The position numbers and the translations under genes were made by a program. Source: Macrostomum lignano (taxonomy: Eukaryota). Taken from it: a stretch of 60,672 nt of DNA. The DNA lies in NCBI GenBank assembly GCA_002269645.1, contig NIVC01001266.1:1-60672 (forward strand), read 5' to 3'. Shown one piece after another: positions 26,201 to 36,079 of the stretch. How positions within the stretch are numbered: the stretch's first letter is position 1; each line of letters opens with the position of its first letter. Below the pieces are notes generated by a model, which saw only the letters and a program-made list of their open reading frames with translations, was not told the origin of the DNA and did not search any database.

Positions 26201-29200
26201 GAGTAACTAGCATCCAGAGAGAGTAACTAGCATCCAGAGAGAGTAACTAGCATCAAGAGAGAGTAACTAGCATCTAGAGAGAGTAACTAGCATCTAGAGA
26301 GAGAGTAACTAGCATCCAGAGAGAGTAACTAGCATCCGGAGAGAGTAACTAGCATCCAGAGAGAGAGTAACTAGCATCCAGAGAGAGTAACTAGCATCCG
26401 GAGAGAGTAACTAGCATCCAGAGAGAGAGTAACTAGCATCCAGAGAGAGTAACTAGCATCCAGAGAGAGTAACTAGCATCTAGAGAGAGTAACTAGCATC
26501 TAGAGAGAGAGTAACTAGCATCCAGAGAGAGTAACTAGCATCCGGAGAGAGTAACTAGCATCCAGAGAGAGAGTAACTAGCATCCAGAGAGAGTAACTAG
26601 CATCCAGAGAAAGTAACTAGCATCCAGAGAGAGTAACTAGCATCCGGAGAGAGTAACTAGCATCCGGAGAGAGTAACTAGCATCCAGAGAGAGTAACTAG
26701 CATCCAGAGAGAGTAACTAGCATCTAGAGAGAGTAACTAGCATCCAGAGAGAGTAGATAGCATCCGGAGAGAGTAACAGCAGACCAGGTAACTAACTAGA
26801 GTCCATAGCAGGGTGCCAACCGATCCCAACAAGAAATTCGCATCTCGGCGTTGGCAGTGCATCGGCCAGGTCCCACTCTCTCAGTCCAGCGTCGTCACAC
26901 CGACGCCGGGGCGCCGCGGCGGCAGCCGTGAAGCACCAGCTGCAGCCGCAGCATCGAACGCCCGAAGAGCGAGCTCAGCTGCGCCAGTGGATGGAGCAGC
27001 GTCGCAAGGAGCAGCTGGGGCAGTACCGCAAGCAGAAGCAAGAGCGAAGAGAGGCTGAGGCGAGGCCCTATCAGGGTGGCGCCGGCGGCGGCGGGGCAGC
27101 ACCCACCGTCTCCGACTGGAAAGCTGCCGAAGCCGAGCGTCAGCGACGCCGGGAGCAGCTACGCGCTGAACGCGAACAACGCGAAGAGGCTCACCTCCGC
27201 CGCCTGATGCAGGAGGACCTGTCCGGCGCGGCCTCCTCTGGCGGACTTCGCGACTCGCACGAGGCCATCCGACCGCGCCTCGAGCCGCAGAAGTCGGCCA
27301 TCCAGCTGATGGAGGAGGAGCTGGCCATGGAGCAGCGCCGGATGGCCGCAGCAGCTAAGGCCGCTTCGAATTCGTCGAGAAGGAACGCCAAAGACGAATC
27401 CGGTCGTCAAGTCGACTCGGGCTTCGGTCTGAGAGGCGAATTCCAGACTGACGCAGAGTACGAGGACTACCTGAACCGGATGGTGGAGCTGTCGTCTGCC
27501 GCAGCCTCCGAGGCGATGCTGCAGCAGGCTAGCAGTAACAGGCCGACACCGCGGGAACCGGACTCAGGGGACGAGCTGGTGCCCTACCAGCCGCCGCCGC
27601 AGAAGCCTCTCACCCAGGTAGTTCGAATGCAGCGGCCCGAGTTGACGCGTAAGGGACCGTCGAGGCGACCGGATCCGCAGGCGCAGAGACGGCTGCACGA
27701 GCAGATGCGCCAGACACCAGTGATGATCACGAAACGGCAGGGTGAGTGACCTGTGCTCCGTCCTCTGTGTCGCTTCTCATCCCTGATGCTTCTCATCTCT
27801 GATGCTTCTCACCCCTGACGCTTCTCATCCCTGACGCTTCTCATCCCTGACGCTTCTCATCCCTGATGCTTCTCATCCCTGATGCTTCTCATCTCTGATG
27901 CTTCTCACCCCTGACGCTTCTCATCCCTGACGCTTCTCATCCCTGACGCTTCTCATCCCTGATGCTTCTCATCCCTGATGCTTCTTATCTCTCATGCTTC
28001 TCATCTCTGATGCTTCTCATCCCTGACGCTTCTCAACTCTCATGCTTCTCATCCCTGATGCTTCTCATCCCTGATGCTTCTCATCTCTCATGCTTCTCAT
28101 GTCTCATGCTTCTCATCCCTGATGCTTCTCATCCCTGATGCTTCTGATCCTTCATTCTTCTCATGTCTCATGCTTCTCATCCCTGACGCTTCTCACCCCT
28201 GATGCTTCTCATCCCTGATGCTTCTGATCCTTCATGCTTCTCATGTCTCATGCTTCTCATCCCTGATGCTTCTCATCCCTGATGCTTCTCATCCCTGATG
28301 CTTCTCATCCTTTATGCTTCTCATGTCTCATACCCCTAAAACTTTACGTGCTTCCTGAGATTTTCACTAGTTTGACATGAGCAGATCCTAGTACAATTTG
28401 TAATTATAATTGAATTTTAATCGCTCCTAAACAGAAAAATTAAACAATAATTAGTGTCGTTTTACTAAAATATTTTAAGTAGAAAAGCGTTTAATGGATT
28501 TTTTATCAGCAGTTGTAAGAAAATGACATTAAGTTGAGTGTGGCTGTTAAAATACAAGCAAAACATCATATCCGTATTTGTTGATTGATGATGGACTCAG
28601 TGATGAAACAGACTTGCCGATCGCTTCACTCCGATAGTGGCCGCTTTGGCCTCCTTAGTGTTGGCGCACGTGATCAGCAGTTCGCTGCGATAATTTCGCA
28701 TCCCGATAGCCTGATAAATCAGAGCTTTCAGCGCCACGTCCTGGTTGAAGAAGTCCATTTCGATTGGTTTCTGAGGCTGCTCCAGGTACCTGTGGCACAC
28801 CTTCAGTAGCAGCTCCCTGCCCATGTCGAGGACGTTGAGCGGCGGCGGCAGCGAGGAGTTGCTGGCGTAGGAGGCGATGAAGAAGAACCGTTCGAACTGC
28901 CACAGAGCCGTGCTGTTACAGTCGATCTCTTCAATTGTTTTGGAGAACAGGGCGACAATGAGGCTGAGCAGTAGTATAGTTGTGATGGTGACGTACAGCG
29001 GCAGCAGTATGTAGGGTACAATAAAGGTTGACTGAGGATTGGGACAAGGCAGAGTGTTGTTGGTCCTGGCTGTGTACACCTCTTCGCAGTTTTCGCCGTT
29101 CACCGTGTCCAGATGGTACTCGCCGAACACGCTGAAGAAGCAGAATTGCACGAGTCGCTTGGCCATGCTGATTAGGCTCATCCTGTTGGGATTGTAGGCG

Positions 29201-36079: not shown

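Follow-up and report, generated by a model that had tools for sequence, protein, structure and literature searches.

The genes OMG, EVI2A, and EVI2B reside in antisense orientation within one intron of the human NF1 gene. Complete genes are likewise found within a host intron in Drosophila, where 2mit lies in an intron of timeless2 (PMC3786989), and in vertebrates, where LRRTM genes lie in introns of alpha-catenin genes (PMC3933685). In such arrangements, the nested genes are mostly antisense to the host, and normal splicing removes the host intron. Intronic genes account for ~6% of Drosophila genes (PMC3786989), and transcriptional interference at nested genes has been described in systems other than the one examined here (PMC3192792). 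Herein we describe a comparable locus in the flatworm Macrostomum lignano. The DNA analyzed, hereafter called the window, is the entire contig NIVC01001266.1 (60,672 bp) of assembly GCA_002269645.1 (Mlig_3_7). A large plus-strand gene, hereafter called the host, is interrupted in this window by an intron at positions 27742-35258, which is the second-from-last intron of its coding region. The coding sequences of two minus-strand genes, hereafter called the guests, lie inside this intron. One encodes a TRP cation channel, and the other encodes a protein that resembles cholesterol 25-hydroxylase (CH25H).

Our preferred reading, to which we assign a probability of about 0.9, is that the interval is a genuine spliceosomal intron of a host encoding ~3,240 amino acids (aa), and that it holds two functional antisense protein-coding genes. 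The evidence for the splice junction, for the guests, and for the identity of the host is considered in turn below.

The join between host exons 21 and 22

The anatomy of the splice sites is that of a conventional intron (Table 1). One codon base is left over at the end of exon 21 at position 27741, the acceptor TATATTTTTCAG finishes at 35258, and exon 22 completes the split codon with two bases to read AEELKRQ.... The host donors (GTGAGT and GTGAGC) and acceptors (TTTTTCAG and CCGCAG) are canonical, have compatible phases, and fit the splice consensus of GT[G/A]AG and CAG given for M. lignano (PMC8629364). A preliminary description of this DNA had placed the phase-1 end of exon 21 at 27741 and the start of the next exon at 35259, and every one of these coordinates holds.

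Protein models point to the same junction. A full HMMER search against 1.84 billion representative proteins, with the spliced C-terminal 369 aa of the host as the query, gave one match, the M. lignano protein A0A1I8I5A1 (UniProt), at 99% identity. Query residues 1-369 align to its residues 682-1050 in a single stretch that runs up to the C-terminus, and its residues 667-951 map to exon 21. This protein crosses both of the terminal joins (...VMITKRQ-A-EELKRQ... and ...GRPAQ-PQQQPG...LRGN). At 99% identity, it derives from a copy or allele other than the one on this contig. Furthermore, A0A1I8G0C8, which is a cluster mate of A0A1I8I5A1, also has the exon 21/22 join.

The public annotation of this contig includes a plus-strand product of 3240 aa that spans the TRP gene and ends exactly at 36079. 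Gene models of this NIVC series were built from a genome-guided RNA-seq assembly with StringTie, TACO, and TBONE (PMC5730564). The same layout is present on two more contigs of the assembly, NIVC01001778.1 and NIVC01000751.1, and the gene order (exon 21, TRP, CH25H-like, exon 22, and exon 23) is common to all three, which rules out a chimeric assembly. The host products annotated on these contigs are 3230 aa (NIVC01001778.1) and 3234 aa (NIVC01000751.1) in length, and both end at the equivalent exon 23 stop codon. Splice sites, phases, protein models, and annotation all agree that exons 21 and 22 are adjacent in the mature product. This support is indirect but strong, and we regard the 27741-35259 join as real. 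The assertion in the preliminary description that two complete minus-strand genes occupy one 7.5-kb intron is supported by three copies of the locus.

It might be argued that the host ends at exon 21, at the stop codon at 27747-27749, and that exons 22 and 23 belong to another transcript, in which case the 7.5 kb would be intergenic and there would be no nesting. The stop codon is in frame and only two codons past the donor, such that the unspliced protein would be only two residues longer. Moreover, there is an in-frame ATG at 35286 within exon 22, and the 99 residues that exons 22 and 23 encode have neither a Pfam match nor a detectable homologue outside M. lignano. However, the exon 21/22 join is present in two UniProt models, three annotated host coding sequences (CDSs) of >3,200 aa finish at the exon 23 stop codon, and the splice sites are strong and have matching phases. 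In exons 22 and 23, the reading frame opens just 5 and 2 codons, respectively, 5′ of the acceptor, and both exons are therefore reachable by splicing only. The DNA after 27749 is a minisatellite, and no host poly(A) signal was found, none having been sought. Given these observations, an end of the host at exon 21 seems highly improbable.

Some variation is evident among models and copies at the 3′ end of the host. A0A1I8G0C8 skips exon 23 and joins exon 22 to plus-strand exons at 39438-39494 and 41288-41431 (KSSLFMLDLRKQSGRGQSG / SSGRPS..FLN). This extension is apparently the next gene downstream, attached either via read-through, via alternative splicing, or in a fused prediction. On NIVC01000751.1, the terminal coding exon of the host is present twice (238-333 and 7622-7717), with identical translations and a separation of ~7.3 kb.

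Table 1. Positions of host, guest, and repeat features at the nested locus, in window coordinates (nt, nucleotides; UTR, untranslated region; TM, transmembrane).
Feature	Position	Strand	Details
Host exon 21 (numbering of the preliminary description)	26885..27741	+	Acceptor CTCTCAG/T at 26884/26885; donor GG/GTGAGT; ends in phase 1
Host intron, 7,517 nt, with both nested genes inside	27742..35258	+	Donor GTGAGT; acceptor TTTTTCAG
Minisatellite, 16-nt units, ~35 copies, between host donor and TRP 3′ end	27772..28324	.	Tandem Repeats Finder
Two candidate ATTAAA poly(A) signals, ~100 and ~175 nt past TRP stop codon	28416..28495	-	Pattern search
Nested gene 1, TRP cation channel, intronless, 1147 aa	28597..32040	-	Annotated product, Pfam, PDB sequence matches
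Spacer from CH25H-like stop codon to TRP start codon, 558 nt	32041..32598	-	Identical in NIVC01001778.1; 544/558 identical in NIVC01000751.1
Nested gene 2 (CH25H-like), exon 2, C-terminal tail and stop codon	32599..32777	-	Aligns with homologue tails
CH25H-like intron, 833 nt, GTGAGT...GCGCAG	32778..33610	-	Filled by 22/42-nt minisatellite at 32902-33548
Nested gene 2 (CH25H-like), exon 1, FA_hydroxylase domain, three histidine boxes	33611..34403	-	Pfam FA_hydroxylase, E 4.5e-21
Stretch between CH25H-like start codon and host acceptor	34404..35258	.	Presumed CH25H-like promoter and 5′ UTR; also 3′ end of host intron
Host exon 22	35259..35461	+	Enters in phase 1, leaves in phase 0; donor GTGAGC; A0A1I8I5A1 residues 952-1019
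Last host intron, 522 nt	35462..35983	+	GTGAGC...CCGCAG; mostly 36-nt minisatellite
Host terminal coding exon 23	35984..36079	+	Reads PQQQPG...; stop codon at 36077-36079
AATAAA ~90 nt 3′ of host stop codon	36170..36175	+	Pattern search

The two guest genes

The 3.4-kb TRP channel gene that had been noted in the preliminary description is borne out by an annotated product of 1147 aa, and a gene with exactly that product is called on two contigs. Pfam domains include N-terminal ankyrin repeats, a TRPM2-like linker (residues 516-634), and a six-TM Ion_trans domain (residues 785-1053), after whose S6 segment the TRP box LWQFERF is located. The protein therefore has the six-TM domain, the TRP box, and the family-type cytoplasmic domains of a TRP cation channel. 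Among solved structures, NOMPC and TRPM channels are the nearest to its core (PDB sequence matches), and its best channel matches are NOMPC, a Nematostella TRPM2-like channel, and TRPM3/5. As judged from sequence matches, the core is like both NOMPC and TRPM, and the N-terminus fits neither. The M. lignano channel shares the six-TM Ion_trans core, the TRP box, and the TRPM2-like linker with group-1 TRP channels (TRPM and TRPN/NOMPC), but it has a short ankyrin region in place of the TRPM homology regions or the 29 repeats of NOMPC.

The second guest encodes a predicted cholesterol-25-hydroxylase-like membrane hydroxylase. Its FA_hydroxylase domain (PF04116) scores 76 bits (cut-off, 31), and the alignment of homologues has nine invariant histidines (H141, H144, H145, H155, H158, H159, H237, H240, and H241). 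Among 64 homologues, with E values down to 1e-109, all informative names are cholesterol 25-hydroxylase or cholesterol 25-hydroxylase-like, and the identity to invertebrate proteins named cholesterol 25-hydroxylase-like is 48-62%. Like CH25H and CH25H-like proteins, the M. lignano protein combines a complete FA_hydroxylase domain with three histidine boxes. In contrast, the nemertean homologue is encoded by a single 903-nt exon and the human CH25H gene is intronless, whereas the M. lignano gene has one minisatellite-bearing intron.

The position of this intron is evident from the homologue alignment. Similarity ends at ...DWDCPG, where the DNA reads CCCG/GTGAGT, and the conserved tail (GGVKPEELL...) is encoded 833 nt further on, following GCGCAG. 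The spliced product of 323 aa is the same, residue for residue, as PAA77330.1 (BOX15_Mlig021145g3), which is annotated on NIVC01000751.1 and is nested there in the host gene for the 3234-aa product. When the open reading frame (ORF) was looked up in unspliced form (308 and 297 aa), there was no exact match, which also indicates an intron. The preliminary description took a plain ORF where there are two exons, the second of which extends the gene to 32599 rather than to 33510. The plain ORF at 33510-34436 is rejected as the gene on the basis of the homologue alignment and the exact match of the spliced product to PAA77330.1.

Comparisons among the three copies of the locus bear on whether the guests are functional genes. 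Relative to NIVC01001778.1, there are 5 nt differences in the TRP gene and 1 in exon 1 of the CH25H-like gene, all of them silent. The TRP gene on NIVC01000751.1 exhibits 26 synonymous and 6 non-synonymous codon differences along with a 2-codon indel that leaves the frame intact, and the CH25H-like CDS exhibits 3 differences, all silent. This synonymous bias indicates that, between copies, both guests are subject to purifying selection. Coupled with intact ORFs and domains in all three copies, it provides sequence-level evidence that both guests are functional genes.

One could nevertheless view the nested ORFs as decaying copies or as artefacts of assembly. The genome of M. lignano is highly duplicated and rich in repeats (PMC5730564), the TRP gene resembles a retrocopy in being without introns, and each guest is uncalled on at least one copy of the locus. 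However, the gene order is the same on three separately assembled contigs, both frames are intact in 3/3 copies, and synonymous changes predominate (26 vs 6 for TRP and 3 vs 0 for the CH25H-like gene). Furthermore, all catalytic histidines are kept, and the CH25H-like gene has its own intron, so it is no retrocopy. Decay or artefact is the least probable of the alternatives that we considered, with only a very slight chance of being correct.

The annotation of the guests is uneven among copies. This contig and NIVC01001778.1 each have a called TRP gene and an uncalled CH25H-like gene. NIVC01000751.1 has the reverse, with a called CH25H-like gene and an intact TRP gene that is left uncalled. 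Divergence is also unevenly distributed relative to NIVC01001778.1. The TRP CDS has 5 differences in 3,444 nt and the following 861 nt (32041-32901) have 0, whereas the unique non-coding flanks (28325-28596, 34404-35258, and 36080-36600) are 2.6-6.5% diverged. The most diverged segment is 34404-35258, at 93.5% identity, and the silent-site divergence of the TRP gene is far under that of the flanks. This pattern suggests gene conversion or very recent homogenization of the 28597-34403 block, and not selection alone.

The guest coding sequences (28597-34403) fall entirely within the host intron. The candidate ATTAAA pair downstream of the TRP gene suggests that its transcript can end within that intron as well. 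We envision that RNA polymerase II would transcribe the host across the full 7.5 kb, and that the spliceosome would join 27741 to 35259, with the transcript of the intervening DNA being discarded. The guests would be transcribed separately off the opposite strand in head-to-tail order, with the CH25H-like gene upstream and the TRP gene 558 nt downstream. We infer that promoters of their own would give the guests independent expression, with transcription beginning upstream of 34403 and ending, still inside the intron, at the poly(A) signals ~100-175 nt past the TRP stop codon.

Because M. lignano has both spliced-leader (SL) trans-splicing and operons, the guests might instead be co-transcribed. 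They would then constitute one transcription unit, in which a single antisense pre-mRNA that begins upstream of the CH25H-like gene is split into two mRNAs by 3′ processing and by SL trans-splicing ahead of the TRP start codon, in an operon-like manner. This alternative alters only the mode of guest expression and leaves the nesting unaffected. Approximately 15% of M. lignano genes have been assigned to operons, for which the genes must be on the same strand and within a repeat-adjusted limit of 1 kb, and the downstream gene must be trans-spliced (PMC8629364). The guests are on the same strand, and the 558 nt between them are within the <1 kb limit. A pattern search revealed no AATAAA or ATTAAA between the CH25H-like stop codon and the TRP ATG, and a TTACAG ~100 nt upstream of this ATG fits the trans-splice acceptor motif [T/C]TNCAG. 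In addition, the spacer is 100% conserved in NIVC01001778.1 and 97.5% conserved in NIVC01000751.1, and the UniProt models A0A1I8G0G7 and A0A1I8GAY4 fuse the CH25H-like and TRP coding sequences.

However, these fused models may be artefacts, in that they contain small invented spacer exons and disagree with each other, and the NIVC annotation has separate products of 1147 aa and 323 aa. Furthermore, the non-canonical signals CATAAA and TATAAA are present just after the CH25H-like stop codon, and the support for an operon comes from sequence and models. A shared transcription unit is accordingly doubtful, although it deserves more weight than the other alternatives. An elaboration in which an SL-resolved two-gene operon lies antisense in the intron of a ciliogenesis gene, such that host and guest expression is mutually exclusive or coupled in cis (for example, in ciliated sensory cells), is quite improbable. 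In the window, the fusions fall at 32041-32777 on the minus strand, and they may reflect either spanning transcripts or a prediction artefact.

Several points weigh against the view that the locus comprises two functional guests within a host intron. The join is backed indirectly, by annotation and protein models. Containment of the guests holds for their coding sequences, with transcript ends deduced only from ATTAAA at 28495 and 28421. The annotation support for the two guests comes from different copies of the locus. Finally, 64 exon combinations yield exactly 3240 aa, so the full host CDS is not uniquely rebuilt. Models of this CDS that were rebuilt with dynamic-programming gene finders and curated site lists range from 2,942 to ~3,360 aa, and the ambiguity lies in the 5′ exons (~4183-6692) and in several optional in-frame segments. 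The annotated host product has 3240 aa, compared to the 3,282 aa assembled in the preliminary description.

Identity of the host gene

CPLANE1 (C5orf42/JBTS17) is an effector of ciliogenesis and planar polarity. Its gene is mutated in Joubert syndrome, and the human protein is ~3,200 aa in length. The three annotated host products (3240, 3230, and 3234 aa) are of this size. A match to the Pfam family Joubert (PF15392) is located near the C-terminal end of the host, with exon 21 as its sole site, and covers 42 residues that correspond to profile positions 49-90 of 334. With a cut-off of 27, this match scores 28.2 bits for a 112-aa segment alone, 23.7 for the exon ORF, and 17.9 for the 1050-aa protein. 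None of 9 composition-matched shuffles had a Joubert match, indicating that the match depends on the order of residues. Based on these sequence features, the host is probably an orthologue of CPLANE1/JBTS17.

Other observations tell against this assignment. The CPLANE1 label rests on a single 42-residue Joubert match near the Pfam cut-off, and Pfam scans of ten further large host ORFs revealed no family related to CPLANE1. Word-seeded searches, for which the junction peptide and a host exon that looked conserved served as queries, came back empty, not even retrieving the protein's own entry, and speak neither for nor against orthology. In the full HMMER scan, the C-terminal 369 aa had no relative outside M. 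lignano. Orthology to CPLANE1 of other animals was not recognizable through these searches, which are of limited sensitivity and which, in the case of HMMER, covered only the C-terminus.

The preliminary description had named the host CPLANE1 and had regarded its terminal motifs, including IDWDEISSM, as CPLANE1-like. What survives of the first claim is the short, order-specific Joubert match, whereas a recognizable orthologue in other animals did not emerge from the searches. The second claim is not supported, as the HMMER scan gave no relatives of the terminal motifs outside M. lignano and the Joubert profile does not reach them. No description of CPLANE1 or C5orf42 in flatworms was found in the literature searched, including the supplements of PMC5730564. 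In summary, the host resembles CPLANE1 in its very large size and in its order-specific Joubert match near the C-terminal end. It differs in that only 42 of 334 profile positions are matched, with a score near the cut-off, and in that the orthologue was not recovered by sequence search.

Repeats, neighboring genes, and comparison with known nested genes

Minisatellites with units of 14-62 nt are present at 26000-26781, 27772-28324, 32902-33548, 35486-35847, 37126-37738, 38206-38889, and 39524-39852. Indeed, each intron examined near the locus carries a long minisatellite, as does the intergenic DNA downstream of the host. Array length varies between copies, such that the last host intron is 522 nt in length here versus ~2.2 kb in NIVC01001778.1.

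Two exact plus-strand copies of a 17-mer, CTACTGTAAGTAGAAAT, are located at 34672-34688 and 35203-35219, in the stretch that separates the start codon of the CH25H-like gene from the host acceptor. Near matches with 2-3 mismatches are present at 44094, 51670, and 52499, and these include the region between H2B and H2A genes. The resulting total of 5 matches compares to 0.19 expected. A similar sequence, GTAGAAATATA, is present upstream of the TRP ATG. This 17-mer could represent either a promoter motif or a small repetitive element.

Elsewhere in the window, there is a divergent H2B/H2A histone pair at 51078-51443 (minus strand) and 52724-53095 (plus strand), as recognized by the Pfam families Histone and Histone_H2A_C. 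ORFs for AIG1/GIMAP-type GTPases are located on the minus strand at 56502-57173 and 58905-59414, the second of which looks truncated or degraded. An EF-hand ORF at 48266-49006 (minus strand) runs into a GEREM-type repeat. Scans of 26500-36500 for Rfam families and tRNAs gave no match.

The nesting is documented within M. lignano only. In the nemertean Tubulanus, the DNA within ±10 kb of the CH25H-like gene had no similarity to TRP or to the host, and the neighbors are genes for G-protein-coupled receptors (GPCRs). Similarity to TRP or to the host was likewise absent within ±10 kb of two further CH25H-like genes. A special function of the nesting is not indicated. The preliminary description had proposed that the arrangement could couple guest expression to ciliogenesis or set up transcriptional interference with it, and both of these ideas are pure speculation for this locus, as its sequence has no bearing on either. 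If the guests were to form one antisense operon in the host intron, then the locus might be of use in a transgenic flatworm model for the study of transcriptional interference, but nothing suggests this.

The locus has little significance beyond annotation, although it is a clean illustration of why genes in intron-rich genomes cannot be read from ORFs alone. The uneven annotation of duplicated copies in Mlig_3_7 also becomes apparent here. Given the ~6% of Drosophila genes that are intronic, the arrangement is commonplace. The locus in M. lignano is an ordinary nested-gene arrangement whose gene models are already in the public annotation. As in NF1, more than one small antisense gene occupies a single intron. 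It differs from known nested genes in that its host is CPLANE1-like and its guests are a CH25H-like gene and a TRP gene, and in residing in an organism that has both SL trans-splicing and operons.

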